Source: Hyaloraphidium curvatum SAG 235-1 | Taxonomy: Eukaryota > Fungi > Monoblepharomycota | Direction of reading: 5' to 3' | Length of the DNA: 64,000 nt | NCBI GenBank assembly: GCA_025558095.1 | Contig: JAIVFI010000002.1 | Location: 186,001-250,000, forward strand | In this document: positions 22,784 through 55,439 of the stretch, piece after piece | How positions within the stretch are numbered: position 1 is the stretch's first letter | Layout: each line of letters starts with the position of its first letter | Notes under the pieces: model-generated | What the model was told of the DNA's origin: nothing | Database searches by the model: none | The model's input: the letters and a program-made list of their open reading frames with translations, nothing else | Position numbers and translations under genes: made by a program

Positions 22784-23484
22784 GGGCCGGGGCTGGTGCG
22801 CAGGGACACTTCGGCTTCGACGCGCACTGCCACTCGGTCGTGAGCAATGCCTCCGCCTCAAAGCCGTGCCGCCAATATGGTTTGGCTTTCGCAGTCATGG
22901 TCAGATGCGCCGATCAGACGAGAAATGAAAGAGTTACTCATGCTAGTGCCGGGGGATCGGCCCGTCTTGCTCCCGAACGCGCGGACCCTGGCCGGAAACT
23001 GATCAGAGCGACGTACATAAGCCATCAGGCTTTGTTGTCAAGCAGTGCCTTTCGCGCCGGATTACCGCCCTGCGTTGGCCTCCAGTTCAGCTTCGACCCA
23101 CTCCCTTGCCTTCCTTTCCATCCACCGCCTCACTCGGGATAGCGACAACGTCCAGGGCGGTTAGGAAGTCGGGCATCTCGTCAAAGGCTATGCGGCCCGA
23201 GAGGCGGCACCCATCCGCGATGAGCAGCTTCGCGGCGCGTAACGAGTAAGGCTCTCCAGCGCAGCGCCATCGCCGACGATCAGGAAGGCAAACTTGGACT
23301 CGCATCTTTGCCAGCTTGCCGGACACCTAGATCAGCAGCTCCAGCCCTCGTATGCCTGCGAAACCGGAGCGTTGGGCTGCGGCTTGCGGGCAGGCAGATG
23401 CGCGGTCCCTCCTTTATCCCTTCGATTGGCGCCCTACATAAGGACAAGGACACCCTCCCCAGCAGCCAGCGCCGCCCTTGCGAC

Positions 23485-24675
23485 ATGTGCGGGGGCGCCG
23501 TCCACTCTGCTGCAGACGCCCCGCGTGTCGCCGGGCAGGCGGACGCGGCGCCGGGCGCGCCCCGCGTGCTCGTCGTCATCGGCACGCGGCCCGAGGCAAT
23601 CAAGCTCGCGCCCGTTGTCGACGCCCTCCGCGCCTCGCCGCTCGCGGTCGACGTGGTCGCCAGCGGGCAGCACACGGACCTGCTCGACGCCGCGCTGGCG
23701 CCGTTCGGCATTTGCCCCGACCACCGCCTGGCGCTGCCCGCCGCGCGCGACCTCTCGGACCTCACCGCAGGCATCCTGCTCGGCATGCGGTCCATCCTCG
23801 CCGCGAGACCCTACGCCTTTGTCGTCGTACAGGGCGACACGACCACCGCGCTGGCCGCGGGCCTTGCCGCGTTCTATGCCCGGATCCCGCTCGCGCACGT
23901 CGAGGGTGGCCTGCGCACCTCCACGCCGCACTCCCCCTTCCCCGAGGAAGCAAACCGCCGCATGGTGTCGCGCATGGCGGCCCTGCACTTCGTCCCCACC
24001 GAGAGCGGCCGCGCAAACCTCCTGGCCGAGGGCACCGATCCCTCGACCGTGCACATCACGGGCAACACCGCCGTGGATGCCTTCTCGCGGACACTTCCCC
24101 TCGTGCGCTCCCTCTCCAGCCAGTACTCTTCCCGCTTTCCCTTCCTGGACCCGGCAAAGCGGCTCGTCCTCGTCACCGGCCACCGCCGCGAGAACCACGG
24201 CGCCGGCCTGGAGGGCATCTGCACCGCTGCGCTCGCCCTGGCTTCCCGGGGCGACGTGCAGGTCGCCTTCACCCTGCACCCGAACCCGCACGTCCGCGGG
24301 CCCGCCGCGGCGATGCTCGCCGGCGCCCCCGACGTCCACACCTTGGAACCGCAGGACTACCGCTCCTTCGTCTACCTGATGTCGCGCTCCTCGCTCATCC
24401 TCACGGACTCGGGCGGGATCCAGGAGGAAGCGCCGCTGCTCGGCATCCCCGTGCTGGTGCTCCGCGAGGAGACGGAGCGGCACGAGGCAGTCGAGGGCGG
24501 CACCGCGAGGGTGGTGGGCACGGACGCTGGGCGGATCGCGGCCGAGGCGGGGAGGCTGCTGGACGATGCGGAGGCGTACGCGGTGGCGGCGAGGGTGCAC
24601 AGCCCGTTCGGAGACGGCAGGGCGGCGGGGAGGATCGCCGAGGTGCTCTGCGGGTACCTTGCAAAGGCCGCCTGA
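23485..24675 (+). CDS. wecB: UDP-N-acetylglucosamine 2-epimerase (non-hydrolysing), bacterial type, intronless
   Basis: GTRPEAIKLAPV, GQH, VQGDTTT, HVEGGLRT, PFPEEANR, TGNTAVD, TGHRREN, HPNP, LTDSGGIQEEAP, VLREETER and PFGDGRA. Confidence 0.96.
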   Translation: MCGGAVHSAADAPRVAGQADAAPGAPRVLVVIGTRPEAIKLAPVVDALRASPLAVDVVASGQHTDLLDAALAPFGICPDHRLALPAARDLSDLTAGILLGMRSILAARPYAFVVVQGDTTTALAAGLAAFYARIPLAHVEGGLRTSTPHSPFPEEANRRMVSRMAALHFVPTESGRANLLAEGTDPSTVHITGNTAVDAFSRTLPLVRSLSSQYSSRFPFLDPAKRLVLVTGHRRENHGAGLEGICTAALALASRGDVQVAFTLHPNPHVRGPAAAMLAGAPDVHTLEPQDYRSFVYLMSRSSLILTDSGGIQEEAPLLGIPVLVLREETERHEAVEGGTARVVGTDAGRIAAEAGRLLDDAEAYAVAARVHSPFGDGRAAGRIAEVLCGYLAKAA

Positions 24676-40947: not shown

Positions 40948-43002
40948 TCACTCCCCGTCCGAATCCCCCCCCACCTCGGCCGCCTCCTCCAGATCGTACC
41001 CCAGCCTGACCACCTGCTCCTCCGCCTCCCTCACGGCCTCGGCCGCGGCCGTCGGCACCAGCAGCCCTCCCCCCCCCCGCGGCGCCTCCCTCCCGACCCC
41101 CGCGGCGTCCATCGCCTGCCCCAGCTGGCGCGCCAGGTTCCCCGCGACGTGGGCGTACCGCCCCGAAATGGCGGCAAAGAACCCCGCCACGGCGCGGGCG
41201 CCGGCGTCGCACGCGGGGCGGAGCGCCGCGGGCGCGCCGCTGCGCGCCGAGAGGAGGAACATGGCGGCGCGCATGGCGGCGGCAAAGGTGGTGGTGTGCA
41301 TGTGCTGCAGGGAGGGGTCGCGCGCGAGGACGGAGGAGAAGACGGAGGCGATGGCGAGGGCGGCGCCGAGGGCGCGGCGGAGGTGGGGCTGCGAGGAGAA
41401 GGGCACCGAGGGGTCGGCGGGCGCGGCGGCGGCGAGCTCCAGGGTGTACTGGAGGACCATGACGACGCCCATTAGGAAGTTGTAGTGCAGGCCTTCCGAG
41501 GTGAAGACCTCGGGGGCCCGGGTCCAGAAGGGGCCGAGCTGGCCGACCAGCAGGGCCGGGCCAAAGTCGGCGGGGAAGGAGGAGGTGATGTCGTCCACGA
41601 TCGAGGCGACGTGTGCGGCAACCTGCGCTACCGTGTACGGCGGGGCCGGTGCCCTGCGCCGGACCGAGGCCAGGGTTGGCGGCGTGGAGCGCTGCAGCGG
41701 TCCGCTGGTGCCGCTCCCCTGCGTCGAACCGGCAGGAGTGGATGCCGCCGGCGAGGGGTTCGGAGGCGACGGGTCGGGAGGAGACAGCCCGGCCTTTTCG
41801 GCAGCCGCCAGGTCGCGGATGCGCAGCATAAGGGTCCGCAGCACCAACGTCAGAAGGTGGATCGCGACGAGGCTCGTCCGTCCCGCAAGCCCGTCCTCGA
41901 CCAGGCTCTGCACCAGGGCGCGCCGCATCATGGGCACCGTCCCCGGCTCCAGCACGGGCCGGAGGTCGACGATGCGCTCGGGCAGGCCCGGCAGGCCGTT
42001 CGCCCCGCTGACGGCGGCAAAGGCGGCCTCGGGAGGGTCAAAGTCGAAGAGGAACTCGGGGCAGGCGATCGGCATCGGGTAGCGGAGCCAGGGCACGTAT
42101 GTCTGCTTGCCGAGGTAGAAGCTCATGACCGTGTCGAGGATGGCGACGGCGCAGTAGAGGCGGATCTTCATCTGCTCGACGGCCCACTCGTCCGCGTTCG
42201 CCGGCCTGGCAGCGAGCGAGGCCCAGCCGTCGCGTTCGGGGCCCAGGCACAGCAGCGAGGTGAGGGCGACCAGGGCCTCGATCAGCGGCAGCACGCGCTG
42301 CAGCTGGCCGACCGGGTGGTAGTAGCTGGCCAGGAGCAGCATGGTCATGGCCGCCTCGAGGTCCGAGATTGTGCGTGCGCCGGGGCGGCGCGCCACCCAG
42401 CCGGCGACGAGCTGGTCGCGGGCGCGGGCGGCGTAGTGGCGGCCCGCACGGACGCGCTCCGCCTGTGTGGCGCCCTCGATTGCCGGGTCCCACAGCGAGC
42501 CCGCGGCGGCCATGGCGAAGGAGAGCGCCCACGGCGGGCCGGCGAAGGGCGGCGGAGGCGCGGGCCCGAACGCCCGCAGCCACGCGGACTTGTGCACGAG
42601 CGGCAGCATCGGCGGCGCGCACCGCCAGAACCCGGCGACGCACGCGTGGAACAGCGCAGACGGCGGCGCGGACGCGGGCGGCAGCGGCACGCCGCGCCGG
42701 CGGGGGGCGCCGCGCCCGGGCGACGCCGCTTCGGCATCGCCCGGTCCGCGCCACGCGGCCCCCGCGGCGCCCGCCGCCCGCCCCGCCCGCAGCGCGTCGA
42801 GCGCGGCACTCTGCGCGTCGCGGTCGAAGAGCGGCACGCTGTCGGGGAGCAGCGGCGCGATGCGGGCGAGGTCGAGCAGCCGGAGCCCCGCCGCCACCCC
42901 CGCGGCCCCGGCCGCCGCCCACGGCGCCGCGGACACCAGGCAGTCCGGCCCGCCGCACGCCCCGCCGGCCGCCGCGCACGCCGCGCACCCGGGCGTCTCC
43001 AT
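40948..43002 (-). CDS. Fungal transcription-factor middle-domain protein with a degenerate Cys cluster
   Basis: N-terminal CAACAAAGGACGGPDC, LPLVHKSAW, DLEAAMTMLLL, DEWAVEQMKIRLY and PIACPEFLF. Intronless 684 aa. Confidence 0.8.
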   Translation of the reverse strand: METPGCAACAAAGGACGGPDCLVSAAPWAAAGAAGVAAGLRLLDLARIAPLLPDSVPLFDRDAQSAALDALRAGRAAGAAGAAWRGPGDAEAASPGRGAPRRRGVPLPPASAPPSALFHACVAGFWRCAPPMLPLVHKSAWLRAFGPAPPPPFAGPPWALSFAMAAAGSLWDPAIEGATQAERVRAGRHYAARARDQLVAGWVARRPGARTISDLEAAMTMLLLASYYHPVGQLQRVLPLIEALVALTSLLCLGPERDGWASLAARPANADEWAVEQMKIRLYCAVAILDTVMSFYLGKQTYVPWLRYPMPIACPEFLFDFDPPEAAFAAVSGANGLPGLPERIVDLRPVLEPGTVPMMRRALVQSLVEDGLAGRTSLVAIHLLTLVLRTLMLRIRDLAAAEKAGLSPPDPSPPNPSPAASTPAGSTQGSGTSGPLQRSTPPTLASVRRRAPAPPYTVAQVAAHVASIVDDITSSFPADFGPALLVGQLGPFWTRAPEVFTSEGLHYNFLMGVVMVLQYTLELAAAAPADPSVPFSSQPHLRRALGAALAIASVFSSVLARDPSLQHMHTTTFAAAMRAAMFLLSARSGAPAALRPACDAGARAVAGFFAAISGRYAHVAGNLARQLGQAMDAAGVGREAPRGGGGLLVPTAAAEAVREAEEQVVRLGYDLEEAAEVGGDSDGE

Positions 43003-43317
43003 TTCCCCGGCGGAGACCGGCGCCTGGCGTCGGGGTGGCTGAAGTCAAACACCACAGAACGCGCCTTCGGCCGGCCGTGGCAAATCCCTAACCGTGGCTC
43101 GCCCTGCTCCTCGAGAAACGCGACAGTTATGGAAGTGGGAGCATTCATCCGGTGACCAGGGACCCAAGCTCAGAACGACCATAGGTACTCTAGTCGTAGC
43201 TGCGTGCCATCCCGTGCCCCGTGTCGACGTAGTCTCCCGTGCCGGCGCTCGCCGTGGAGCTCGCCTTGGTTTCGATCCGCCACACCCTGGCCAGGGAACA
43301 GAGTTACGGCTCCTCCC

Positions 43318-43843
43318 TCAGCTACTGGCGCACGAGGCTGGCCCCCGGTCCTGCCTGAACCCCCCCGGTCCGTACATCTCCTTCACCTTCTCCACCAGCC
43401 TGCGCCTGTACGTCGGCAGCCAGGGATCCACGCCGTGCGTCTCGTTGTCCAGGCGCAAACCGCTCGGCGTGCCATCTGTGCCGGAAGCACAGGCCCCTCC
43501 TGACGACTCGTTCCAGTAGTGGGTCCGACATTCACGGGAGCACGACTGTGCGCGGCGGCAGCGCGGTCCGCGCCGGCAGCGCGGAGGCGGAGGCGGCGTC
43601 GACGAGGAGGTGCAGCACGTTCCAGCACGGCAGGAAGTTGACCAGCGACGCCAGCATCCTTGCCGCCAGGGGGAACGAGCGGCGGTCGACGACGGCGACG
43701 ACGGCGACGACGTCCATGTTGTGGAACGGGCAGGCCGGGGGCGGGCCGCGGCCCGGCGAGGGCAGCGCCAGCAGCAGCAGCGCGCCCGCGAGCAGCGCCA
43801 GCTGGGGCAACGGCCGCTCCGCCGCGGGGCACGCGCGCTTCAT
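43318..43843 (-). pseudogene. Internally deleted type II membrane protein, possibly glycosyltransferase-like
   Basis: Signal anchor plus the start of a GT-A-like beta/alpha unit (VVAVVDRRSFPLAARMLASLVNFLPCWNVLHLLVD) stops at 43532. An out-of-frame coding-like C-terminus (THYWNESS..PWLPTYRRRLVEKVKEMYG..*) follows immediately. Confidence 0.5.
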
Positions 43844-43945
43844 GGTGCCGCGGGGGCAGGGCGGGCAGGGCTCAAGGCGGTTAGGGATTAGGGATCGTTG
43901 GGGATAGTACCGCAAACACACCTGCCTGGAAAGGGTTAGGTGAAA
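43844..43945. promoter_or_regulatory. Short bidirectional promoter with tandem AGGGAT
   Basis: 102-bp spacer between divergent ATGs that contains TAGGGATTAGGGATC at 43882-43896. Confidence 0.45.
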
Positions 43946-45160
43946 ATGGTGGGCGTCCGTCACCTCGCCGCGGGCGCCGTCGGCGCCGCCCTCGTCCTCG
44001 GCGCGGCGCTGCGGAGCGGCGCCCCGGGCCGCGGCGCCCGGCTGCCGGCGGCGGCGGGCCCCCGCGCGGACTTTGTGCCCGGGGCCGGCCGCCGCGCCCA
44101 CGCCGCGCTGTGCCTCGCGGTGAAGGACCAGCCGGCAGACGTCCTGGAGTGGGTGGCGTGGCACCACCATCTGGCGCGCGTGGACCGCTTGTACGTGGTC
44201 GAGAACGTGAACGACTGGCCGCCGGAGCGGCACGCTGCCCCCCCAACGCGCACGGAGCGCCTCCTCGCCGGCTACATCGGCGCCGGCGTCGTCGAGCACC
44301 TCCCGTTCGTGTTCTCCGAGGCCACGCGCGGCCGCTACCCGCACCACCAGGCCTTTGCCTACTCGGCGTGCTTCGACCTCTTCGGCCTGCGGCACGAGTG
44401 GATCGTCGCCATCGACGCCGACGAGTTCGTCGAGTACCCCGGGATCGGCAACGGCACCTCGCTCTCCGACATCCTCCGGGCGCACGAGCGGCCCGGGGTC
44501 GGCGAGCTCCTCCTCAACTGGCGCATGTTCGGCAACCCCAACGGCACCGTGCGGACCCGGCCCCTCGCGGGCACCGTGGCCACCTACACGGGGTGCATGC
44601 CCGCGTCCTACGGCGACAACCGCCACCACAAGACCGCCGCGCGCCCGCGCGCGCTGCGGGCTCTGAACATACACGCGGGAGAGCTCCGCGAGGGCTGGCG
44701 GGCCGTGGACGAGCGCGGGGTCGCGCTGCCCGTGACCGACCTGCGCAACGGGACGGCCACCGTCGCGAGGGTGTGGGTGAACCACTACGTCAGCAGGAGC
44801 GCGGAGGAGAACGCGGAGAAGACCGCCAGGGGCTCGGGGGATCTGAACACAAAGACGGCCAAGTTCTTCAAGCTCATGGACCGCGATGCGACCGAAACGT
44901 GCGCATCGGCACGGGATGCTTGGTTGGCCAGCGGGGTGTGGGACGGGGCGGCCGAGTGGGCCGAGGGGATCGGGAACGGAGGTGTGGCCCCGAGAAGCGG
45001 CCCCGGACCAGCGATGCGCGGGCTTCAAAAGATGAGCGGAGAGGCTCGCAACGACGATCCGCCAGGGGCAGTCTCTCTCCTCGGTCTCGATGGCAGCTGC
45101 AGGCGTGGCGAGGCCGCAGTTCTCGCTGCCGCGGACAGTTCATCGAGCTCTTCCGCATGA
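43946..45160 (+). CDS. Glycosyltransferase, GT92/DUF23 (GT2-related) family, intronless type II membrane protein
   Basis: LCLAVKDQPADVLEWVAWHH, DRLYVVEN, QAFAYSAC, WIVAIDADEFV, LNWRMFG, HHKT and VNHYVSRSAEE. Confidence 0.87.
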   Translation: MVGVRHLAAGAVGAALVLGAALRSGAPGRGARLPAAAGPRADFVPGAGRRAHAALCLAVKDQPADVLEWVAWHHHLARVDRLYVVENVNDWPPERHAAPPTRTERLLAGYIGAGVVEHLPFVFSEATRGRYPHHQAFAYSACFDLFGLRHEWIVAIDADEFVEYPGIGNGTSLSDILRAHERPGVGELLLNWRMFGNPNGTVRTRPLAGTVATYTGCMPASYGDNRHHKTAARPRALRALNIHAGELREGWRAVDERGVALPVTDLRNGTATVARVWVNHYVSRSAEENAEKTARGSGDLNTKTAKFFKLMDRDATETCASARDAWLASGVWDGAAEWAEGIGNGGVAPRSGPGPAMRGLQKMSGEARNDDPPGAVSLLGLDGSCRRGEAAVLAAADSSSSSSA

Positions 45161-45838
45161 GTCCAGGCGCACGCATGGATGCAAGCTGGTGCCGCCAATC
45201 GATCAACGATAGCCGCAACAGGTTCCGGTGCGGGCTTCGTTCTTTCAGAGCCCACAGAGGCGCCGCATGATACCGGGATCACCCGCCTGCCCTGCGGGAG
45301 GGCCAGATGCTCCGAAGCCGCCTCAGGGAGCCAGCGTGGCTCCGTGCCCGGTACCGGCTTCCTCAGCACTGGTGAACAGGCCGGCGGGCAGTTCCGAATG
45401 CGAGAGGGATGCAGGGAAAGGCGAAGGGTGGTGTCGTCATTTTCCGGGTCCGTCACCGCCCCGACGCACAGCTACTGCCGCCGCCGCAGAGAAGCCCCGC
45501 CAGACGCACGCAACGGGACCTTGACTGTGCCTGGAAGCCCTCGAGATCCACGCGGGTGGGGCCCGGTCGGGTGCGGGCGGTGGTGGTTCCGATCTCCTTT
45601 GCGGTGGCTTCCGGGGGTGGCGGCTCGCTCCGAGCCCGTTGCACGGAAAGCCCTCGAATCCCTCCCCGAAGGCATCCGGCGATACTAATGAAACCATATT
45701 CGATTCCGAGGTGCCCTGCCATGCGAGAAGTCGGGGGCCGGGACGACCGGGGGGTTCAGCCTCCGCCTCGTCTTGGGATCCAAAAAGCGGAGACCGATTC
45801 CCACTCCTTTCCCCTCCCGCCCCACCCGCTCATCACCA

Positions 45839-46694
45839 ATGGCGGCCCCGTCCTTCCTGTCCGCCGCGGCGCGGCCGCAGCCCGACGCGTGGCACGGCGG
45901 GCCCGCGTCCGCCGGCGCCGGTGCGGAGGCCGCAGGCGCTTCGCCGCACCGCGGCTTCCCCGCCCGCGCAGCACTCCCCGTCGCCTTCCCCTCCCCTCCC
46001 CGCGCACCGATGCCGGCCGCCGACTGCGCGCCCGCGCTGCCGCTGTCGTTCTTCCTTCCTTCCGCGGGCGGCCCGCCGCCGGTGCCGGGCCACTGCTACT
46101 GGACGTCGCCCGCCTTCCTGGAAACCGTCGCGCCGCACCTCGCCCGCGCCCCGCTGCCCTTCCCCCTGCCCGGCTTCCCGGCGCAGGTGCGCCGCAACTC
46201 CTCCTCGTCGGGCTCCGAAACCCTCGTCGCCGGCGTCCCCGAGCACCCTTCGGAGCGCTTCGACTCGGACGCCGACGGCGACTTTGAGCTGGACGACCCC
46301 GCGGACTTTGCCGGGCTCGCCGGGGCGACGCAATCTCCGGACCCCGAGGGAAGCACCGCCATCGGCGACGAACCCAGCGGCTCCTCTTCGTCCGACGAGG
46401 CGGAGGGAAAGACCGACGCCTGCCGCGAATGCGGCCGCGCCTTCAAATCCACCGGGCACCTCAACAGGTCGGCCCGGCATCGCCCCCCCATATCCAACGC
46501 AGCTGACGTCCGTCCCGCCCCCCCGTCGCAGGCACAAGCGCTCGCACCTCCCCGAGTCCCTGCGCCCGCACGCGTGCTCCTTCGGGTGCGGGCGGCGGTT
46601 CGCGCGGACCGACAACCTCCGCATGCACGAGGCGACGCACCGCCAGGGCGGACATAGGAGGAAGAGGACGCGGCGGGCGAGGGTGGACGACTGA
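45839..46694 (+). CDS. Two-finger C2H2 zinc-finger transcription factor (Nrg1-like recognition helices)
   Basis: CRECGRAFKSTGHLNR|HKRSH across intron 46468-46531, then CSFGCGRRFARTDNLRMHEATH. Confidence 0.9.
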
Positions 46695-47012
46695 GCCCGG
46701 TTTGCGGGCGCGACGCGGGCTTATCCGGTGTGTCGGCTCGAGGATGGAGGTCCCGCCCCCAGTCTTTATCGAACACACGCCACGTATTTCTTGGTCATCT
46801 CACTATGCTGCCTACGCACCCTCTTCTCCTACGCCATTGTCGTTGCCGTTATGTCCGTGGCGCTGTGCAGCGAAGGCGCGGAAGCCCACATCCCGTCCTC
46901 GTCCCCGGTCGTCCCCTGGTAGTCCAGCTGGGCCTTTCCATGTGTCCCTTTTGCGAATTGGCATCCGAAGTTGCGGCCTTTCGACGGCGGCAACGGCCCG
47001 TCGCCCCCAGGA

Positions 47013-47324
47013 TCAGAGCTTCGGCGCCCCCGCCATCCCCTCCCACGCCTCCCCCCCCTCCGACTCCCAGCCATCCTCCCCCTCCAGCCCTTCCGCGTAC
47101 GCCGCATGGCACGTCCCGCAGACCTCGGAGCCCCTCTTCCCGTGCGCGCACTCGGGCGCCTCCCCGCCGCGGTACGCCTCGGGGAACACGGCGGCGAACA
47201 GCGTCCTGCGCACGTCGGCGCCGTTGACCACGGGCGGGGGGACGTGCCGCGCCGCGAGGGCGGCAAAGTCCGGCGGGGCGGGGAACGGCGGGGACGGAGC
47301 GGCGGCGGGGGGCCGCGGGGCCAT
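47013..47324 (-). CDS. Small hypothetical protein with a CxH..CxxC motif
   Basis: ATG ORF of about 103 aa containing CAHGKRGSEVCGTCH and an acidic tail. Confidence 0.4.
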   Translation of the reverse strand: MAPRPPAAAPSPPFPAPPDFAALAARHVPPPVVNGADVRRTLFAAVFPEAYRGGEAPECAHGKRGSEVCGTCHAAYAEGLEGEDGWESEGGEAWEGMAGAPKL

Positions 47325-47900
47325 GCCGGGGAAAAGGAGTGTGGGGGAAGCGGGAAGGTGTGCTGCAGGCAGGAGGCGGGGGCGTGCGTGTGTGGTCCCA
47401 AGGCGCGCGAAAGAAACGGGGAAACGGGGGGCGGGGTTCGGTGGCGGACGATGGCGGAATCCCGCCGTGGTGTCGTGCACAGCGATCGGGGCGGAGGGAT
47501 CGGCGAATCGGCCGGCGGCGGTGGTTTCCGGGACGCGCGCCGCGGCGCCGGCCGGCAGGGCCCGCGGAGTCTAGCGAAAAATGTGCTGGAGGGCGAGGGA
47601 GCGAAGGAGCAGGTTTCCGGCGGCCGGGAGCAGGTGTCGGCGCGGCGCGCCGCACCGAGCGGTTCCCGTCGTACTTTCGGACAGCCCGATTGGTTGGGGA
47701 CCCCACTCGCGGGTCAAGTCGGGCTCTCCCGCGCATCCTGCGATGCCGCTATGTGGCCGGAGGACATTCGCGGACGTGGATGCGCGTCGCGGCGGGTGCC
47801 GGGTCCGATGAAAGTCCAGGATGGGCACAGGCGGCGGAAAGGGTGGTTCGGGGATCGGGCGAGGTTCAAGCGCACCGACCCGGCGTGCACGCGCGGCCAC

Positions 47901-48751
47901 CTATATGCACCCGCAAGGTCGCCATTTGACATCATTGCTCCGTCCCTTTCCGGGGGCCCGAGGCCGGTGGGGCGGTGCGGTGCGGGGGGGCGGAAGTGTT
48001 CCGCAAAAGGACGACGCGGACCGATCGGTCCATGCTGCCATTCGGATCCATGATGCCGATCCGCGCCAGATTGGGATGCGGGCGACGCGGAAAGAGGGGA
48101 GGGAGATTTCGGTGAGGGCGATGCGGCCCATGTCGCGCTTGGTGCGTGCGGCGGGGGGCATGAATTCCTGCTGCGTCGCGAGGAGGCGGAGGGTGCGGTC
48201 CGGCGGCGGGGACAGCGCGATGGGCCGGGGGTCCTCGAGGCCCTGAATGTCGCGTTGCCCGGATCGGGGCGCAGCGACTTCGGCACGCGGAGTTCGACGA
48301 CGGGCACGGCGGGGTCGATGCCCAGGTCTGCGTCCAGCCGCGCGAGGGTGGTCCGCGAGACGAAGCGGTCCTTGTAGATGTAGCGCGACGAGGCCACGTC
48401 GATGCGGTAGCTGACGTGCCGCGTGAGCACCCACAGCGCGCCGTCGGAGCCGCGGAGCAGGGTCGGCGTCGACGGGGCGAAGGTCACCTCGCCGCCGGCA
48501 AAGGCCGCGTGGCCGTCGGGGAACAGCCGCCGCGCGCGGACCATCAGCGGGCGCAGAGCGGGGGCGTGGCGCCAGTCCGAGGGCAGCGCCAGCACGCCGG
48601 CGGCGAAGGAGGCGTTGTCCGCCGCGACAAAGGGCGGCGGCCTGCGCGCGCACGCGGGGGACGGCGCCGCCACCCGGCCGAGCGCAAGCAGCGCGACGAG
48701 GAGCGGCAGGAGCACAAGTGCGACGGGGCGCCGGAGTCCCGCAAAGCCCAT
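47901..48751 (-). pseudogene. Frameshifted and truncated type II membrane beta-propeller glycoenzyme (GH130/GT91-like fold)
   Basis: Signal anchor, PSTPTL..LTRHVSY, and GLEDPR appearing in a new frame after a 1-nt loss near 48243. Protein-like sequence fades after about 48070. Confidence 0.55.
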
Positions 48752-48856
48752 TCGGCGCCGTCTGGGACCGTCCCCGATTGGGGGGGCCCGGCGGGGCAAT
48801 CCCTTGCTTGGCGGCGGATACTCCTAGGGGCCCGCAGCACAATTCGGACCCGCGGG
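48752..48856. promoter_or_regulatory. Short bidirectional promoter containing CAAGGGATTGC (minus strand)
   Basis: 105-bp spacer between divergent ATGs with GCAATCCCTTG at 48796-48806. Confidence 0.45.
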
Positions 48857-50893
48857 ATGCGCGGCCTGCGGTGGCTCTGCTCGCGCGGCCTGCCGCTCGG
48901 CGGACTCGTGGTGATCGCGGCCGGCCTCGCTCGGCGGGGCGGCGGGCCGGCGGGGGCGGCGTCGGCCGCGGGGCGGGCATTCGTCACCGCCGCGTGCGGG
49001 GATGCCCCGCCGGACGCCGTCGCCGCGCTGGTCGAGTCCCTCCGACCGTGCGGACTGCTGGTGGTCGTCATCGCCGACCGTGCGGACGCCGCCAACGTGT
49101 CGCGTGCGTGTCCGGACTGCAGCGTCGCGGCGGGGGACGGCGTGGACGAGAGGCGGGGCTGCGTCGATGCGTTCGCCCGAGCGTGGGCGCTACCCTTTTC
49201 CGAAGTCGCATACTTTGCACCGAATGCGCTGGCGGTGAAGGTGACGGGGCCCGACGGAGCCTGCGGCCTGCTGGGCGACGCAGCCCTCGCCCGCCTGCCC
49301 GTCAATGCTGTGCTCGCCGCGGGCGGGCCGCTGGACGGCGATGCGCCGGACCCGTCGGTCGTGGTGCTGCGGCCACACGTCCGGACTGCTGCGGCCATCA
49401 AGGAATGGGCGGACGCAACCCCGCACGCGTCCCCCGCCGAGCTGCTCGCCGCCTTCTTCTCCCCCGGCGACCAATCGCCTAACAGCCAGTCGCCGAAGCC
49501 TGGCAAATGGTTCCGCCTGCCCCGAACGTCCAACGTGCAGACATCGATGGCCCGCCTGCCCGGCTATCCCGCGCTGGCGGACCGCGCGGCAGTGCTCGTC
49601 TTCGACGGCCCCGCACGGCCATGGGACTTCTTCCGGACCGCCTCCCCGCGCTGGCGCGACTCGTTCGACCCCGCAGCCTGGTGGGCGTGGCAGCGGGCCG
49701 CCAACGCCGCCCGCGCGAGGGCCGGGCTCCTCGGGGACGGCCAGGCGGCGCGCTGGGCTGGCAGGCAGGCGAGCTGCAACGCGCTATTCGGGCAGACCGG
49801 CGGCGCCGACCCCGGCAACGGTGCAGCAGCCACAATGGGGCTCCTTCCGTGGCCGGTCTCCCGTACCCTGCTCCCCCCGCCTCCCGGCTCACGCGGCGGC
49901 AAGCTCGCCGTGCTCCTCGCCACCTTTGATCGCGCCCTGGACACGGTCGCCCTCCTCCTGCGGCACTACGCTGCCAGCCCCGCCGTCTCGGCCGTCTACC
50001 TCCTCTGGCTGAACCCATCCACCGCCGGCCGCATCGCCGCCCTCCCCCCCGGCTGGCCGCATCGCACCCCCACACCTCCCCCCGGCATGGCCCCCATTAC
50101 CGTCGTCCCCGCCCCCCGGGACTCCCTCAACGCGCGCTTCCACCCCCTCCCCTCCCTCCCCTCCTCCTCCATCCTCGTCGCCGACGACGACATGCTCCCC
50201 TCCCACGCGGCCCTGGACCTCCTCCGCCGCGTGCACCTCCTCGACCCGGACCGCCCGGCGTCGTTCCACGCGCGGGGCCACGCGAGGGGCCACGACGGGT
50301 ACCCGAAGTACCTTGCCGGGGCGCACGAGATGCGCGGGTACTCGCTCGCCCTGACCAAGCTCATGGCCGCCCCCGCGGACCTGCTCTTTGCCTACTCGTG
50401 CATGCTCCCCGACGCCGTGCACGCCTTGGTGGACCGCGAGGCGAACTGCGAGGACGTCGCGGCGGGGTTCCTCGCATCGGGCACCTCGGGCAAGCCGCCC
50501 CTCCTGGCGTGGCCGAGGGACGTGGCGGTGCGGTGCGCGCCGCTCGCGCCCGGGGAGGACCCGGGCACGCCGGAGGGGAAGAAGGCCTACTTCGACGCCG
50601 GCTACCTGGACGGGGGCTACTTCTTCCGCGGCGCCGACGGGCCCGCGACGAGGCTGGGGTGCAGGGCCGAGGCGGCGGTGCACGATTTCGGGAGCAGGGG
50701 AGGAGGGCTGTCGTCCAAGCCGGGTCACTTTGCCGCGCGGGCGAGGTGCCTGGCGGAGCTGGAGGGGGTGTTTGGCGACGCGCTGGTCACCGCACGGGAG
50801 ACAGTGGGAGAGTTCAGGGGGCTGCCACCCGTCGGAGGCGGGGGAATGGAGGACCTGGCCGAGGCGAGGGAGCTCGTGCGCGGGCCCGGCTGA
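48857..50893 (+). CDS. Degenerate GT8 (glycogenin-like) domain fused to a GT64 (EXTL-type) glycosyltransferase, intronless
   Basis: GT8-like: AFVTA, AWALPFSEVAYF, PSVVVLRP, WFRLPRTSN and VFDGPARPW. GT64: LATFDR, DSLNARFHP, ILVADDDM, YSLALTK, NCEDV and GLSSKPGHFAARARCL. Confidence 0.88.
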   Translation: MRGLRWLCSRGLPLGGLVVIAAGLARRGGGPAGAASAAGRAFVTAACGDAPPDAVAALVESLRPCGLLVVVIADRADAANVSRACPDCSVAAGDGVDERRGCVDAFARAWALPFSEVAYFAPNALAVKVTGPDGACGLLGDAALARLPVNAVLAAGGPLDGDAPDPSVVVLRPHVRTAAAIKEWADATPHASPAELLAAFFSPGDQSPNSQSPKPGKWFRLPRTSNVQTSMARLPGYPALADRAAVLVFDGPARPWDFFRTASPRWRDSFDPAAWWAWQRAANAARARAGLLGDGQAARWAGRQASCNALFGQTGGADPGNGAAATMGLLPWPVSRTLLPPPPGSRGGKLAVLLATFDRALDTVALLLRHYAASPAVSAVYLLWLNPSTAGRIAALPPGWPHRTPTPPPGMAPITVVPAPRDSLNARFHPLPSLPSSSILVADDDMLPSHAALDLLRRVHLLDPDRPASFHARGHARGHDGYPKYLAGAHEMRGYSLALTKLMAAPADLLFAYSCMLPDAVHALVDREANCEDVAAGFLASGTSGKPPLLAWPRDVAVRCAPLAPGEDPGTPEGKKAYFDAGYLDGGYFFRGADGPATRLGCRAEAAVHDFGSRGGGLSSKPGHFAARARCLAELEGVFGDALVTARETVGEFRGLPPVGGGGMEDLAEARELVRGPG

Positions 50894-50962
50894 TCGGAGC
50901 ACATTCACCGGAGCAGCGTACCCGATCGGCGGGAAGCCTCCATTGTACCACACGCCACGACG

Positions 50963-52858
50963 CTACTGCACCAGCAGCCCGCTCGCCCCCATCTTGCCCA
51001 CACCCCCCGCCAGCATCGGCCCCCCCGCCCAGTCCCCCGCGACCCCCTTGCCCGTCCGCAGCACGTTCCCAAACACCCCCTCCAGCTCCGCCAGGCATCC
51101 CTCCCTGACCTCCATGTGGCTCTTCTTCCCTGACACCCCTTTCGGCCCGCCGTGGTCCTCGATCGCGGGGCGCGGGCCGCACCGCAATTCGGTGCCGTCC
51201 GGGGCGCGCATGAGCACGGGGAGGTAGCTGTCCCCCTCGTCGCGGGTCATCGGCCCCGCATGCGCGGGCGCGCACCGCCACGCACCGGGCGGATCGGGCG
51301 GCCACACGGCGAGCGGGGCGCGGCCCGCCGCGCCCGAGAGCAGGAAGTTGGCGGCCAGGTCCTCGCAGTTCTTTGCCCGCTCCGCCACGGCGCGCGCGGG
51401 AAAGGGGAGCGCGCACGAGTGGAGGAAGAGGAGGTCCGAGGGCGCCGCCATGGCCTTTGTGAGCACCATCGAGTAGCCCTCCCCGAGATCGGCCCGCGTC
51501 CACTTGTACGACCACCCGCCCTCCTTCCCGCGCACGGCATGGCGGGGGTAGTACCCCGCCAGCCTGTCTCCATCCGCGCGCCAAGCGCGGAGCAGCGCGC
51601 TCACTGCCCCGTGGGAGAGGAGCATGTCGTCGTCGAGCACGAGGATGCCGCGGGGAAGTGAGGGCAGGGGGAGGAAGCGGTCGTTGAACGAGTCCCTCGA
51701 CGGGGGGACCACGTGCACGGATGCCTGCTTTCGGCCGTTGCGGGGGTGGAGGTGGAACGGCCAATGGGGGGGTAGCGACCGTGCGGCGTCCTGCGTGCGG
51801 TTGTCCAGCCACAGGAGGTAAACGGATTCGGCGTCGGGGTGCAGGGCGTAATGCCGCACGAGGAGCGCGACTTCCTCCAGGGGGCGGGAGAAGGTGCTGA
51901 TGAGGAAGGCGGCGCGGGCTTCGGCGTCGTCCGAGTCGGGGGAGGGGGGCACGAAGGAGGCGGGAAACGGCCAGCTCGGCGGGTCGGTGCCCGCCGAGGG
52001 GGTTGGGAGGCCGAAGAGCGCGTCGCACCGCGGCCGCACGGCGTCCCAATCCGCCGCTTCCTCGCGAGAGACCAGGCCCGCGGCCAGCCGCGAGGCGTGC
52101 AGGGTGCGCCGCCAGAGCCACCACGCAGCGGGGTCGAACGACTCCCGCCAGCGCAGCTTTTCCCGGCGCGGCCCGGCGCGGAAGAAGTCCCAGGGCCGGG
52201 AGGGCCCGTCAAAGTGCAGCACCGCCGCGCGGGGGGCGAGAGATTTGTAGGCGGGCAGGCGGGCCAGGGACGCGCGCACGTGGAAGCGCTGCGGCAGGCG
52301 GAGCCAGGTGCCCGGCGCCGACGCGTTGCCCGCGGCAAAGTACCCGGCCAGGAGGTCCGCGAAAGGGGCCGAGGGGGTTTCCGCTGCCCGCCGCACCAGC
52401 GCGTCGCGGACTGCCGGATCGGGGCGCAAAACAAGCACGCCGGGGTCGATCGCATCGCCGTCGCCCGGCAGCGAGGTCGCGAAAAGCGCGTTCCGCGGGG
52501 CATTATTGCCAAAATCCAACAGCTCGCAGGCGGCGGGCCGTGCCAACGCGCCGGCGGGAAGCAGCGCGACGGAGCGGTGTGCGAGCCCCCACGCGTCCAG
52601 CGCCGCGCGCCCGCAGTCCGCGCCCCCTTCCGGCCGCAGCATGACGAGCGGGGCATTACACGAGCGCAGGGAGTGTTGCAGCGCCGCCAGCGGGTCGTCG
52701 TCGCCCGGCCCGCAACGCACCGCCGCGAACGCGGAACGGCCTGCTGGAGCGCCCCGCGGCGACCCGGACGCGTCGGGACTCGCCAGCCGCAGCGCCCAGA
52801 ACGCGCAGAAAAAAAGGACCAGTGCGGACGCGGCCAAGCGCGACCGCGTGCCCGCCAT
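50963..52858 (-). CDS. Paralogous degenerate-GT8 + GT64 fusion glycosyltransferase, intronless
   Basis: PGVLVLRP, WLRLPQRF, LHFDGPSRPW, ISTFSR, DSFNDRFLP, LVLDDDM, YSMVLTK, NCEDL and GVSGKKSHMEVREGCL. Confidence 0.88.
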   Translation of the reverse strand: MAGTRSRLAASALVLFFCAFWALRLASPDASGSPRGAPAGRSAFAAVRCGPGDDDPLAALQHSLRSCNAPLVMLRPEGGADCGRAALDAWGLAHRSVALLPAGALARPAACELLDFGNNAPRNALFATSLPGDGDAIDPGVLVLRPDPAVRDALVRRAAETPSAPFADLLAGYFAAGNASAPGTWLRLPQRFHVRASLARLPAYKSLAPRAAVLHFDGPSRPWDFFRAGPRREKLRWRESFDPAAWWLWRRTLHASRLAAGLVSREEAADWDAVRPRCDALFGLPTPSAGTDPPSWPFPASFVPPSPDSDDAEARAAFLISTFSRPLEEVALLVRHYALHPDAESVYLLWLDNRTQDAARSLPPHWPFHLHPRNGRKQASVHVVPPSRDSFNDRFLPLPSLPRGILVLDDDMLLSHGAVSALLRAWRADGDRLAGYYPRHAVRGKEGGWSYKWTRADLGEGYSMVLTKAMAAPSDLLFLHSCALPFPARAVAERAKNCEDLAANFLLSGAAGRAPLAVWPPDPPGAWRCAPAHAGPMTRDEGDSYLPVLMRAPDGTELRCGPRPAIEDHGGPKGVSGKKSHMEVREGCLAELEGVFGNVLRTGKGVAGDWAGGPMLAGGVGKMGASGLLVQ

Positions 52859-52951
52859 CCGCGCAGGAGCGGGACTACGGTTCGCCCAGCCCGCCCAGAG
52901 TGCCAAGGGATCAAGATTCGTCGCCGATCAGCAGCCTCGCGTACAGCGAAT

Positions 52952-54247
52952 CTACGCGATGCCGGCGCCCGCTGCCTTCTTCCCGCGACCATCAGCCCGG
53001 GACCGGGCGCGATCGGTCCACACGCGCGACCCGGGCTGCCGATCCCGCTCGACCACGGTCCCGGACACCGCTGCCGGCGCAGGAACGAGCTCTCCGCCGC
53101 CGAGCCGGGGGACAAAGCTGCACGCGGGGAGCGCGTCCGCTCCCGAAGCGCGCCGAGACCAGGTCCATGCCTTGCATCGGGGCCAGTCCGACGCGCACGC
53201 TGCGGCGCACGCGTCCGGCGAGGCCTCGGGGCCCAGGTAGTCCGGCACAGAGGCCGCGCGCCTGACGGCGGCTTCGTATGCCACTCCGTCCGTCCTCCCT
53301 CCCTGCACGACCTCCGTCCCCGCCTCGGCACCGCGCCGGTATCCGCCGAGCGAGAAGGCGAACCAGTCCCTCTCGACGCCGTTCAGCGTCGTCCTCACCG
53401 CGGCCGACATCGCGACCGTGTGGTTCAGGGTCGACCCCGGGTATGGATCCGTGGCCACCAGCGCCGGCCAGAGCGCATGGCACCGTCCCGGGAACGCCTT
53501 GAGCACGGCCTCGAACCCGCCGACGTCCAGGGGCTCCCTGCCCGCCGCCATCCCCGCGGAGGCGGCTGCCGCGGCGCCGCGGCGGAAGCCGACGGCGTGG
53601 GCGCCGAACACGCGGGCGGGCTGCACGAGGCCGCGCTCGGCGGCGAGGGTGGCGTTGATTCCCGGGTCGTGCATCAGCGTCGCGCCGAGCCAGATGGCCT
53701 GCCAGTCCGCGGGCACGCGGCGCACGGAGGCGTCGAAGGCGCGGGGAAAGTCGGCGTGGAGCACCGCGTCGTCCTCCAATATGAGCACGCTCGGCCCGTC
53801 CGGGGTCGAGACAGTGGCGTTCCCCACGGCGCCGAGCAGCCATCTCATGGAAGCCCACAGCGCCCACACGCCCGGCGTCCGTTCCTTTTCCGCGGCCATC
53901 TCGCCGCAGCGTTCCCGCGCCTCCGGATCGGTGAGGCCGTCGCGGGCGGCGATCACCGCGTGCGGGGCCCCCAAGGCGGAAAGCTGCGCCGAGACGGCGA
54001 GCGCCCGCCGGGACAGCCGATCAAGTCCGATCACGAGGACCAGATCGAAGACGTGCCCCAAAGTGCAGACTTCTGGCGGCCGAGGGCATCCTGCCGCGGC
54101 GGGATGGGGGACGGCGCGGAGAAGGGACGGCACGCGGTCCAGAGGCACGAATCCCGGCTGCATGGTGCCGCCCCGCGACGACAGCAGGTCCGCAACAAAC
54201 AGGACGGCCGCGACGAGGACCGCGGCGCGCCGGAAGCCGCGGCGCAT
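52952..54247 (-). CDS. GT25-family glycosyltransferase with a C-terminal PAN/apple domain, intronless
   Basis: FDLVLVIGLDRLSRR, AARDG, ALWASM, VLILEDDA, PADWQAIWLG and GAHAVG. C-terminus SPDACAAAC..RCKAWTW..CSF..VSG. Confidence 0.82.
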   Translation of the reverse strand: MRRGFRRAAVLVAAVLFVADLLSSRGGTMQPGFVPLDRVPSLLRAVPHPAAAGCPRPPEVCTLGHVFDLVLVIGLDRLSRRALAVSAQLSALGAPHAVIAARDGLTDPEARERCGEMAAEKERTPGVWALWASMRWLLGAVGNATVSTPDGPSVLILEDDAVLHADFPRAFDASVRRVPADWQAIWLGATLMHDPGINATLAAERGLVQPARVFGAHAVGFRRGAAAAASAGMAAGREPLDVGGFEAVLKAFPGRCHALWPALVATDPYPGSTLNHTVAMSAAVRTTLNGVERDWFAFSLGGYRRGAEAGTEVVQGGRTDGVAYEAAVRRAASVPDYLGPEASPDACAAACASDWPRCKAWTWSRRASGADALPACSFVPRLGGGELVPAPAAVSGTVVERDRQPGSRVWTDRARSRADGRGKKAAGAGIA

Positions 54248-54302
54248 GCCGGCATCCAGGGGATTTCAAGGGATTGCGGGACGGCCGACGCGTCGAATTA
54301 GG
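54248..54302. promoter_or_regulatory. Very short bidirectional promoter containing CAAGGGATTGC
   Basis: 55-bp spacer between the divergent GT25 and GT34 ATGs with the motif at 54267-54277. Confidence 0.45.
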
Positions 54303-55352
54303 ATGGGCGTCCCATTGCCGCGGCCCGGGGTGCGCCTCGTGGCGCCGGTTGTGCTGGTGGCGCTGCTCGCGTACCGGCGGTGGGACGATTGGGAGCCGCC
54401 CGCCGCGCCGCCGCGGAACCCACGCGTCGCAATCGTCACGGCCTTTGTCGGAACGGCGTTGGCGCCGCTGGCCGCAGTCTCGCGCCCGTTCAAGGAGCGC
54501 CACGCGGCCCGCAACGACTACTCGCTGTTTGACGCGGCGTCGCCGTCCTTCGCCTCCGAGTTCGGCCCCGACGCGTCCGCCTTCGAGCCGCCCCCTCCCT
54601 CGGCCGCCTCGACGATGGAAGGGCTGGACGCCATCTACGCAGCCCGCCGGCGCATTAAATTGCGTTCCCTGCGCGCCGTCCTGGCCTCGGGCCGGTTCGA
54701 CTGGGTCGCCTGGACCGACGCCGACCACGCCTTCCTCAAACCCTCCTTCTCCTTTTCCGCCGCCGGGCTGCTCGACCCCCGCTGGGACCTCGTCCTCCCC
54801 TCCGCCTCGCACCATTCCGCAAAATGGCACGGCATCCCCAACCTCGGCTTCACCCTCCTCCGCCGCGACCCTTGGACCCTCTCCCTCCTCGACGCCCTCC
54901 TCGACATGTCCTCCCGCCCGTGCAACCGCACCGCGCTCGCCGGCACCCGCGCCAACGGCTGGCTCGAACTGTGCACGCAAGAGGGGAGGTACTGGCTCGG
55001 CGACCAGGGCCTGCTAATGGCGTACCTCGCGCTGCACCCCGGGGAAGCGTGCCGCGCGAGGAGGATACCCATCCGCGCGGCGGGGGGGCTGTGGCCCTGC
55101 GTGAAGCCCGGGGATCCGGCCGTGCATTTCGCGGGGGCAAAGGATCCGGGGAAGGCGGTGCGGATGCTGCACGCGCTCGATGCGCACGCGCGGAGGGATC
55201 CGGAGGGGGGTGTGCCGGGTGGGGGGGCGGGGGAGATGGGGGAGGCCAAGGCAGCGTGGGAAAAGGGGGAGTGCGAGGGGGCGGAGGACACTTCCGAGGT
55301 GCGGGCGAGGATGGAGGCGGATTGGCCGCCGTGCGACGGACGGAGACGATAG
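54303..55352 (+). CDS. GT34-family (GMA12/MNN10-like) glycosyltransferase, intronless
   Basis: RVAIVT, KERHAARNDY, IKL, FDWVAWTDADH, NLGFTLLRRDPW, GDQG and PGDPAVHFAG. N-terminal signal anchor. Confidence 0.85.
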   Translation: MGVPLPRPGVRLVAPVVLVALLAYRRWDDWEPPAAPPRNPRVAIVTAFVGTALAPLAAVSRPFKERHAARNDYSLFDAASPSFASEFGPDASAFEPPPPSAASTMEGLDAIYAARRRIKLRSLRAVLASGRFDWVAWTDADHAFLKPSFSFSAAGLLDPRWDLVLPSASHHSAKWHGIPNLGFTLLRRDPWTLSLLDALLDMSSRPCNRTALAGTRANGWLELCTQEGRYWLGDQGLLMAYLALHPGEACRARRIPIRAAGGLWPCVKPGDPAVHFAGAKDPGKAVRMLHALDAHARRDPEGGVPGGGAGEMGEAKAAWEKGECEGAEDTSEVRARMEADWPPCDGRRR

Positions 55353-55439
55353 TGTGTCACAATAAGCGGGCCGGGCAACCCGCTTCTTTTGGCCGGCCCG
55401 ATCTTCCACGGCCGAGCAATCGCCGTCATGCCCGCTTGC

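Follow-up and report, generated by a model that had tools for sequence, protein, structure and literature searches.

Eukaryotic genes for Golgi glycosylation are usually scattered, and matching transferases to one glycan is slow as a result. Galactosaminogalactan (GAG), an extracellular glycan of fungi, depends on one large membrane synthase together with an epimerase, a deacetylase and hydrolases. The five-gene GAG locus of Aspergillus and Metarhizium has been described as a conserved biosynthetic gene cluster (PMC8224951, PMC8647848). In plants, the GIPC head group is built in consecutive steps on one glycolipid by IPUT1, a member of family GT8, followed by GMT1 or GINT1, both of family GT64 (PMC7980081). 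Glycosyltransferases (GTs) that carry two catalytic-type domains in one chain have also been compiled, among them EXTL3, which binds UDP in its GT64 domain but not in its GT47 domain (PMC9178029).

Here we describe a 12-kb block of the fungus Hyaloraphidium curvatum SAG 235-1, at 43.3-55.4 kb of the 64,000-nucleotide stretch of DNA that was analysed (the window, from whose first letter positions are counted). The block holds a GT92 gene (B), two fusions of a GT8-like and a GT64 domain (E and F), a GT25-like gene with a PAN domain (G), a GT34-like gene (H), two decayed signal-anchored ORFs (S and D) and a two-finger C2H2 factor (C). It is a real, lineage-specific and probably co-regulated cluster of glycan genes. 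Its likeness to the GAG locus is that fungal genes for one extracellular glycan would be co-located; it differs in having five small type II GT-A enzymes and no processing enzyme, and in a linkage that is not conserved in the four other eukaryotes examined.

The block is flanked by gene A (40948..43002, minus strand), a single ORF of 684 aa with a GC3 of 0.93 and a weak fungal transcription-factor domain (Pfam Fungal_trans, E 0.028). Gene S (43318..43843, minus) is separated by a bidirectional spacer of 102 bp (43844..43945) from gene B (43946..45160, plus), which encodes a type II glycosyltransferase of 404 aa with a DxD at residue 157. Gene C (45839..46694, plus; Pfam zf-C2H2) follows, then the small ORF D1 (47013..47324, minus; about 103 aa) and gene D (47714..48751, minus). 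A bidirectional spacer of 105 bp (48752..48856) lies between D and gene E (48857..50893, plus; type II, 678 aa), which is convergent with its paralog F (50963..52858, minus; 631 aa, same architecture). The spacer upstream of F (52859..52951) measures 93 bp and leads to gene G (52952..54247, minus; type II, 431 aa), and G shares a bidirectional spacer of 55 bp (54248..54302) with gene H (54303..55352, plus; type II, 349 aa, DxD at residue 139). Hydrophobic N-terminal anchors are found on S, B, D, E, F, G and H, and the intact transferases would reside in the Golgi.

A previous sequence-only reading of this DNA had listed the same gene content, three head-to-head pairs with spacers of 55-105 bp, and a C2H2 factor within the block. 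All of this agrees with the measured layout, with weak evidence for the GT25 call. That reading had also set the cluster apart by its absence of introns. B, E, F, G and H are indeed single ORFs and other genes nearby in the window are intron-split, but gene C contains an intron of 64 nt. Long intronless ORFs and a GC content of 70-74% are, moreover, common elsewhere in the genome; many genes other than GTs share these traits, which therefore do not single out the cluster and are no hallmark of its transferases. The argument that unrelated families cannot have been brought together by tandem duplication holds for the non-random mix of families but not for the paralogs E and F, where one adjacency comes from duplication.

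The C-terminal halves of E and F match Pfam GT64 (PF09258) at 95.3 bits (4.8e-27) and 100.4 bits (1.3e-28), against a cut-off of 21.3, and F matches PDB entries of EXTL3, EXT1, EXT2 and EXTL2 at E-values from 2.7e-12 (EXTL3) to 1.3e-9. The 14 members of the family that were aligned all retain the GT64 DDD motif, in which D409 and D411 are invariant and D410 nearly so, and the GT64 domains of E and F would be active, of the retaining alpha-hexosaminyl or hexosyl transferase type. For the N-terminal halves, the Pfam GT8 match falls under the cut-off (E 0.0086), F aligns with glycogenin (GT8) in the PDB over about 155 residues at 5e-5 to 5e-4, and homologs of the fusions carry precomputed GT8 hits. 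The GT8 DxD is missing from all three Hyaloraphidium copies, whose residues in that column are PAG, APN and ASN, whereas the column reads DAD or DSD in Rhizophlyctis and in the protist members P0012, P0016, P0034 and P0038. The GT8-like domain ahead of GT64 would thus have lost its metal-binding DxD in E and F. The two proteins are 45% identical, a third GT8-GT64 copy lies on contig C14, and the architecture also occurs in chytrids, yeasts, microsporidia-related lineages, a red alga and other protists. A word-based homolog search with F, swamped by low-complexity words, had as its sole match F's own haplotig copy, and a metagenome scan with the fusion alignment returned no relatives.

As type II proteins with two GT domains, E and F resemble the exostosins (GT47-GT64), LARGE (GT8-GT49) and the chondroitin synthases (GT31-GT7). 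With the exostosins they share a C-terminal GT64 domain, and with EXTL3 the apparent competence of only one domain of the two. The combination of a GT8-like with a GT64 domain is, however, absent from the list of bi-domain GTs in PMC9178029. Compared at the level of families, E and F unite in one chain the two families of the plant GIPC pathway, a glycogenin-like GT8 and a GT64, with the difference that the GT8 half is degenerate in Hyaloraphidium.

The other three transferases are assigned on more indirect grounds. B alone scores 21.6 bits against Pfam GT92 (cut-off 23), a paralog 46% identical to it passes at 6.9e-9, and a profile of five B paralogs matches the galactan synthase 8D3T (GT92) at 7.5e-6. 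By these matches B is placed in GT92 and would be an inverting, galactan-synthase-like enzyme. G has an EDD motif in its GT25-like region, a weak Pfam GT25 match (E 0.26) and a C-terminal PAN/Apple-like domain (PAN_4, 24.1 bits against a cut-off of 27, E 3.8e-5). A profile of G and its paralog retrieves from the PDB procollagen galactosyltransferase 1 (COLGALT1, GT25) alone, at a weak E of 0.38-0.61; the assignment of G to GT25 is a weak one, and an AlphaFold model of G made without an alignment was unusable (pLDDT 36). For H, the language-model feature neighbours are GT34/DUF273 (0.96, with 185-191 shared features) and the PDB matches are weak ones to XXT5 and XXT1 (E 0.12-0.63); a Pfam search gave no match, and no paralog was found in the genome. 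G would be a GT25-like protein with a PAN domain, and H a retaining GT34-like enzyme. NCBIfam searches of B, D, G, H and the G paralog gave no match, word-based homolog searches with G and H, swamped by low-complexity words, found nothing, and a metagenome scan with a G-like alignment returned no relatives.

Two of the anchored genes are no longer intact. In a three-frame translation, S runs for 103 codons in one frame, meets a stop codon at around 43534 and resumes in a different frame that extends to 43318; its N-terminal hydrophobic segment has a KD value of 2.0, and its RNA contigs are only faint. In D, a truncated or decayed gene, the coding signal stops about 500 nt past the ATG, an RNA contig (47587-48519) runs colinear and unspliced across the break, and no paralog was found in the genome. 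Both may be decaying members of the cluster. Decay in two of the seven signal-anchored genes fits weak constraint. D1 encodes a CxxC motif and an acidic tail, has an RNA contig at 47058-47475 and belongs to a dispersed family, with DNA matches of 70-71% on contigs C25, C21 and C8; it probably stands outside the glycan unit.

Transcripts of B, C, D1 and D are present in the RNA contigs of one run, which is known to be RNA because it contains a spliced contig. This contig (word depth 148) defines the intron of gene C, a GT..AG intron at 46465-46528, and the exons of C were translated separately. The contigs of B (44114-44581 and 44704-45635) are colinear with the genome and unspliced. Contig depth cannot rank the genes by expression. 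One side of a contig joint from 43651 to 49082 is only 22 letters long, and this joint was treated as spurious. When the zinc-finger recognition code is applied to the finger residues of C, the predicted target is ?AG-GG?, with an AGGG core. The region adjoining the paralog of C on contig C10 holds a P450 gene and not GTs.

A sequence with this core recurs in the promoters of the cluster. An AGGGAT box lies 81 bp upstream of the ATG of A (TAGGGATT, 43083..43090, minus strand, in a telobox-like context), twice and overlapping in the S/B spacer (43882-43896), in the D/E spacer (AAGGGATT, 48798-48805, within the 11-mer CAAGGGATTGC), upstream of F (AAGGGATC, 52905-52912) and in the G/H spacer (54268-54275, in the same 11-mer as in D/E). 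The box emerged post hoc: among the 6-mers of the five promoters AGGGAT ranks first, present 6 times in 671 bp where 0.14 sites would be expected (P 1e-8, or about 2e-5 corrected for 2080 6-mers), and the k-mers ranked next all overlap it, while a plain test for a 6-mer common to the four short spacers gives P of about 0.1. Six of the seven WAGGGATY sites in the 64-kb window fall within cluster promoters. In 31.9 Mb the 11-mer has 11 distinct sites, of which two are in the cluster, 5.5 kb apart; the sampled sites elsewhere are intergenic and do not visibly adjoin GT genes. The TTAGGGAT flavour of the box at A and S/B resembles telobox-like elements, and these two promoters may therefore not be cluster-specific. 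In the proposed mechanism, transcription would start from very short bidirectional promoters, in each of which the start codons are 20-90 bp away from an AGGGAT box, and C would be the candidate factor that binds this box.

A comparison of GT density with the genome background, which the sequence-only reading had put forward as a check, confirms that the grouping is non-random. Three of the 46 Pfam-detected GT loci (four families) fall within the 12-kb block, which gives a genome-wide corrected P of about 2e-3 with G and H uncounted. Across the genome, the Pfam-detected GT loci form 21 pairs no more than 20 kb apart (1.3 expected), and true cross-family pairs number 5 (0.9 expected, P about 2.5e-3). 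At least three further mixed glycan clusters were found: on contig C2 (320-350 kb; pyruvyl transferase, GT14, GT92-EGF, NeuB and a nucleotide-sugar transporter), on contig C35 (470-484 kb; three GT8, sulfotransferase, GT92 and pyruvyl transferase) and on contig C14 (628-648 kb; NDP-sugar dehydratase, four GT2_4-like and PL4-like). As in the present block, intron-poor type II GTs from several families are placed next to one another there, but these clusters differ in carrying genes for sugar nucleotides, a transporter, or pyruvyl or sulfo transferases and in having no AGGGAT box, whereas the present block is GT-only and has an embedded C2H2 factor. The genome holds several mixed clusters for glycan biosynthesis, and the present block is one of these. 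A segmental duplication that copied an entire cluster was rejected: the paralogs of B, G and E have unrelated genes as neighbours, the closest B paralog (contig C28), the G paralog (contig C18) and the GT8-GT64 copy on C14 belonging to no GT cluster. Contig C55, which resembled another copy of the cluster, proved to be a redundant contig of the assembly, with 99.9% identity and a break of about 1 kb of poly-C.

The sequence-only reading had interpreted the block as a co-regulated assembly line for one glycan. Non-random grouping of families, the transcripts, the common AGGGAT box in five promoters and the C2H2 factor inside together fit a co-regulated unit. On the other side, B, G and E have their closest paralogs outside GT clusters, and the linkage proved not to be conserved: in Batrachochytrium, Rhizophlyctis and two uncultured eukaryotes, none of them closely related to Hyaloraphidium, the GT8-GT64 gene has no homolog of B, G, H, D or S up to 10 kb away. 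We give roughly even weight, for and against, to the specific proposal that the five intact type II transferases, of four families, work as a lineage-specific, co-regulated unit on the same glycan, carried by a glycoprotein or a glycolipid. A somewhat doubtful but serious competitor is co-location without common function, by which duplication, rearrangement and decay let fast-evolving, lineage-specific GT genes accumulate in blocks that are GC-rich, intron-poor and gene-dense, the neighbours serving different glycans and the promoter elements being generic. The absence of conserved linkage is in keeping with this, as are the dispersal of the canonical GT34 loci across the genome, the duplication of E and F, the decay of S and D, and the scarcity or lack of detectable homologs of G, H and D; intronless, GC-rich long ORFs also fill blocks with SDRs, beta-lactamase, kinases, P450 and orphans, and short bidirectional spacers are common in the genome. 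Against it stand the enrichment of the AGGGAT box, which is specific to the cluster promoters, and the recurrence of cross-family adjacency; since GTs in other clusters have partners in the pathway beside them, namely genes for nucleotide-sugar synthesis, a transporter and pyruvyl and sulfo transferases, neutral pile-up is not a ready explanation.

Far less probable is that the block is a foreign island, taken up recently from bacteria or a giant virus. This would account for the intronless cluster genes with their high GC3, the bacterial-type sugar-nucleotide genes nearby and the viral clusters among the language-model neighbours of F and H, but the GC3 matches that of other native intronless genes, a spliceosomal intron interrupts gene C, eukaryotic type II anchors are present on all members, the GT8-GT64 architecture is shared with chytrids and the other eukaryotic lineages named above, and a non-systematic look turned up no flanking repeats or mobile-element genes. 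The sugar-nucleotide genes are both intronless, on the same contig and 19-25 kb upstream of the cluster, and reach NCBIfam equivalog cut-offs: wecC (18471..19733, plus), a UDP-N-acetyl-D-mannosamine dehydrogenase, scores 523 bits with NF008286 (cut-off 459), and wecB (23224..24675, plus; start codon uncertain), a non-hydrolysing UDP-GlcNAc 2-epimerase, scores 382 bits with TIGR00236 (cut-off 210). By these profile scores WecB and WecC are genuine. It is improbable, however, that the cluster is an assembly line using their UDP-ManNAc(A), as the sequence-only reading had suggested. That reading saw no WecG/TagA transferase in the window, and the whole genome in fact has no GT26 match, so that some other transferase must take the WecB/WecC product, if it is used at all. 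Nothing ties the two genes to the cluster: an RCC1-repeat receptor kinase gene sits between them, about 19 kb with intron-split and other unrelated genes and two genes with weak fungal transcription-factor domains separate wecB from the cluster, and no WAGGGATY box was found at either gene within the window. Characterised enzymes of GT92, GT64, GT25 and GT34 are not known to use UDP-ManNAcA, and it is just as plausible that ManNAc-type precursors are consumed by a separate cluster with NeuB and a transporter, about 95 kb downstream.

A wider and more speculative extension of the co-regulated unit, which we consider unlikely as a whole, is that much Golgi glycan synthesis in this fungus is organised in self-contained regulons, a eukaryotic counterpart of bacterial polysaccharide loci. 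Here, C would activate the five transferases through AGGGAT in their shared bidirectional promoters, and the GT8-GT64 proteins would belong to an ancient family that ancestrally carried out a GIPC-like two-step reaction adding two alpha-linked sugars, of which only the GT64 step would still be active in Hyaloraphidium. What is new at this locus is the AGGGAT box in five cluster promoters, together with the predicted AGGG core for factor C. If position and a common promoter box predict pathway membership, such clusters would be ready hypotheses for whole glycan pathways. These would cover GT92, GT64 and GT25, which are rarely studied in fungi, and an uncharacterised GT8-GT64 family that ranges from chytrids to red algae. 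Clustering of the kind familiar from secondary metabolites would then extend to surface glycans in an early-diverging fungal lineage.

Between 43.3 and 55.4 kb of the window, the Hyaloraphidium curvatum genome (31.9 Mb in 55 contigs, with the window at C2:186001-250000) carries a cluster of genes for Golgi-type glycosyltransferases (GTs), as the sequence-only reading had observed; its presence is confirmed here, with corrections. Gene models were obtained by ORF calling guided by GC3, and are designated A (40948-43002, minus strand), S (43318-43843, minus), B (43946-45160, plus), C (45839-46694, plus), D1 (47013-47324, minus), D (47714-48751, minus), E (48857-50893, plus), F (50963-52858, minus), G (52952-54247, minus), H (54303-55352, plus) and I (55440-56198, minus). 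Gene I encodes a phosphoribosyltransferase, matched by the adenine phosphoribosyltransferase model below threshold, and is the right border of the cluster. Gene A has a weak fungal transcription factor middle domain only, without a Zn2Cys6 cluster, and its first 21 residues hold four cysteines within an Ala/Gly-rich stretch. The short contig C55 (17,650 bp) duplicates positions 48976-64000 at 98-99.9% identity, the sole difference being a run of poly-C, nearly pure and about 1 kb long, within gene E (L016:1176-2174). It was rejected as a second cluster or allele, as this poly-C-bearing redundant copy is a long-read or assembly artefact.

The products of S, B, D, E, F, G and H all open with a basic stretch followed by a hydrophobic one, as is typical of type II anchors, and the acidic motif is DxD in B and H, DDD in E and F, and EDD in G. 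E and F contain GT64 domains (Pfam 4.8e-27 and 1.3e-28; match to EXTL3, 2.7e-12) preceded by a glycogenin-like GT8 region (PDB ~5e-5; Pfam GT8 0.0086). B alone scores just below the Pfam GT92 cut-off; it has 46% identity with a paralog above that cut-off, a profile of five B paralogs matches the GT92 galactan synthase structure 8D3T (7.5e-6), and by these matches B is assigned to GT92. H appears GT34-like from its language-model neighbours (0.96) and weak matches to xyloglucan xylosyltransferases. The weakest of the family calls is the GT25-like assignment of G, with Pfam E values of 0.26 for GT25 and 3.8e-5 for PAN_4 (under the cut-off); a profile built from G and its paralog matches, in the PDB, the GT25 enzyme COLGALT1 alone (E ~0.4-0.6). 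This only paralog of G (678 aa; contig C18, ~491-495 kb; L026:4063-5964, minus) directly adjoins a GH20 beta-hexosaminidase gene (L026:1750-3783, minus).

An exhaustive profile search recovered 1181 relatives of the GT8-GT64 proteins, with full-length two-domain members in Batrachochytrium, Rhizophlyctis, Dipodascopsis, Limtongia, Amphiamblys (annotated 'GT8 + GT64'), Paramicrosporidium, a red alga, Rigifila and marine protists. The GT64 DDD is conserved across the aligned family (with D409 and D411 invariant and D410 almost so). Rhizophlyctis and several protists have the GT8 DxD, which is absent from all three Hyaloraphidium copies, their nearest relative (P0005) and Batrachochytrium. Because the DxD has been lost in the Hyaloraphidium copies, the most likely role of the N-terminal half of these proteins is that of a non-catalytic module. 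There is a precedent in EXTL3, in which UDP is not bound by the GT47 half (PMC9178029); the Golgi bi-domain GT list of the same paper does not include GT8-GT64. In an uncultured eukaryote (ENA metagenome contig, L034:10001-14198) two GT8-GT64 genes are convergent, as are E and F. In four distant eukaryotes (Batrachochytrium, Rhizophlyctis and two uncultured eukaryotes; L025, L032, L033 and L034; 21-30% identity), the DNA up to 10 kb from the fusion gene holds no homolog of B, G, H, D or S, nor of wecB or wecC, and so gives no support for conserved synteny of the cluster.

Part of the cluster is decayed. The frame of S shifts after 103 codons, and the coding signature of D is strong (GC3 0.88-1.0) over ~450-500 nt and is then gone in all frames; a paralog search of the genome returned none for D. 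One public run carries 55% of the region's words, and is taken to be RNA since one of its contigs has a 64-nt GT..AG deletion (46465-46528) and adapter tails. D is not rescued by splicing, as the RNA contig is colinear across the point where the coding signal is lost, and the RNA contigs across B, D1 and D are unspliced. D1 is a small transcribed gene (~103 aa, with an acidic tail after a CxxC) with 70-71% DNA matches on contigs C25 (two, inverted), C21 and C8. The intron at 46465-46528 falls in gene C, where its removal restores a two-C2H2-finger protein, the exons being read separately.

The proposed contrast between intronless GT genes and intron-bearing neighbours holds within the window, where an alpha/beta hydrolase gene and DAO, HpcH and kinase fragments are split, but is not specific to GTs: other blocks of the genome (SDRs, beta-lactamase, ankyrin kinases, P450, orphans) likewise have long intronless ORFs and 70-74% GC. 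The intronless, high-GC state is thus a property of the compartment. The main rival to a co-regulated cluster is that fast-evolving GT genes pile up neutrally in intron-poor blocks.

A six-frame census of the genome using four Pfam GT models gave 46 loci, of which three lie within the 12 kb of the cluster against 0.017 expected (genome-wide corrected P ~2e-3, a statistic that leaves out G and H). Genome-wide, 21 pairs of GT loci lie at most 20 kb apart against 1.3 expected, and five are true cross-family pairs against 0.9 expected, a pair on C42 being left out as a single fusion gene. Three further mixed clusters occur: at C2:320-350 kb (polysaccharide pyruvyl transferase, GT14 branching enzyme, GT92-EGF, NeuB, nucleotide-sugar transporter and two additional GT92-like genes; L014, L020, L015), which shares its contig with the present cluster, ~85-110 kb downstream of it, and whose NeuB-like synthase scores 327 bits, below the 400-bit equivalog cut-off; at C35:470-484 kb (three GT8, sulfotransferase, GT92 and pyruvyl transferase; L028, L029); and at C14:628-648 kb (NDP-sugar dehydratase, four GT2_4-like genes and a PL4-like protein; L030, L031). 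The cluster is one case of a genome-wide habit, though some GTs do not follow it, canonical GT34 loci being dispersed across the genome. Duplication of a ready-formed cluster is ruled out, as the closest paralogs of E, B and G lie among unrelated genes.

The sequence AGGGAT is present in the bidirectional spacers S|B, D|E and G|H, upstream of F and in the 316 bp upstream of A, with 20-90 bp between box and start codon; six of the seven sites of its extended form, WAGGGATY, in the window lie in these promoter spacers. It is the most enriched of all 6-mers in 671 bp of promoter DNA (six sites against 0.14 expected; P 1e-8, or ~2e-5 once the 2080 6-mers are allowed for); the k-mers ranked just below are all overlapping ones, and P is >= 1e-3 for those unrelated to it. 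The motif was first spotted by eye, post hoc, and a plain test for a 6-mer common to four short spacers gives P ~0.1 (7-mer-equivalent test, 0.004-0.007). D|E and G|H have in common the 11-mer CAAGGGATTGC, with 11 distinct sites genome-wide. At A and S|B the box has the form GGTTAGGGAT; these two sites may be generic, given their likeness to telobox-like and TAACC elements of housekeeping promoters. Elsewhere, over 172 kb of other loci, the box is found at background frequency, and none of the other GT clusters scanned carries it. The helix residues of factor C at -1, +3 and +6 (S, H, R in finger 1; R, N, M in finger 2) would, by standard C2H2 recognition rules, predict a site ?AG-GG?, which fits the AGGG core. 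Its zinc-finger region has a paralog on C10 (687000-688300; L023:7040-8272; ~72% DNA identity), with two TAGGGATC sites less than 600 bp downstream, beside a P450 gene.

The suggestion that the wecB/wecC product feeds the cluster is possible but unsupported. The bacterial-type, intronless WecC (18471-19733, plus) and WecB (23224-24675, plus) genes both pass NCBIfam equivalog cut-offs, so H. curvatum can probably make UDP-ManNAcA. They are separated by a single-ORF gene on the minus strand (19784-22153) for a receptor-like protein that combines RCC1-like repeats on the extracellular side, a stalk rich in Ser/Thr and a transmembrane segment with a Ser/Thr kinase domain, and ~19 kb of intron-split and other unrelated genes, including two with weak fungal transcription factor domains, lie between them and the cluster. 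A scan of the window found no WAGGGATY box at either gene, and GT26 (WecG/TagA) had no match in the genome.

In plants a GT8 enzyme (IPUT1) and then a GT64 enzyme (GMT1 or GINT1) perform consecutive steps on GIPC (PMC7980081), which makes a glycolipid acceptor for the GT8-GT64 family a reasonable lead, nothing more. That the cluster makes a single product, and that factor C regulates it, are offered as hypotheses. On the best reading, the cluster is a real, lineage-specific group of Golgi-type transferase genes that are probably regulated together, with some members in decay, and H. curvatum has several such clusters.
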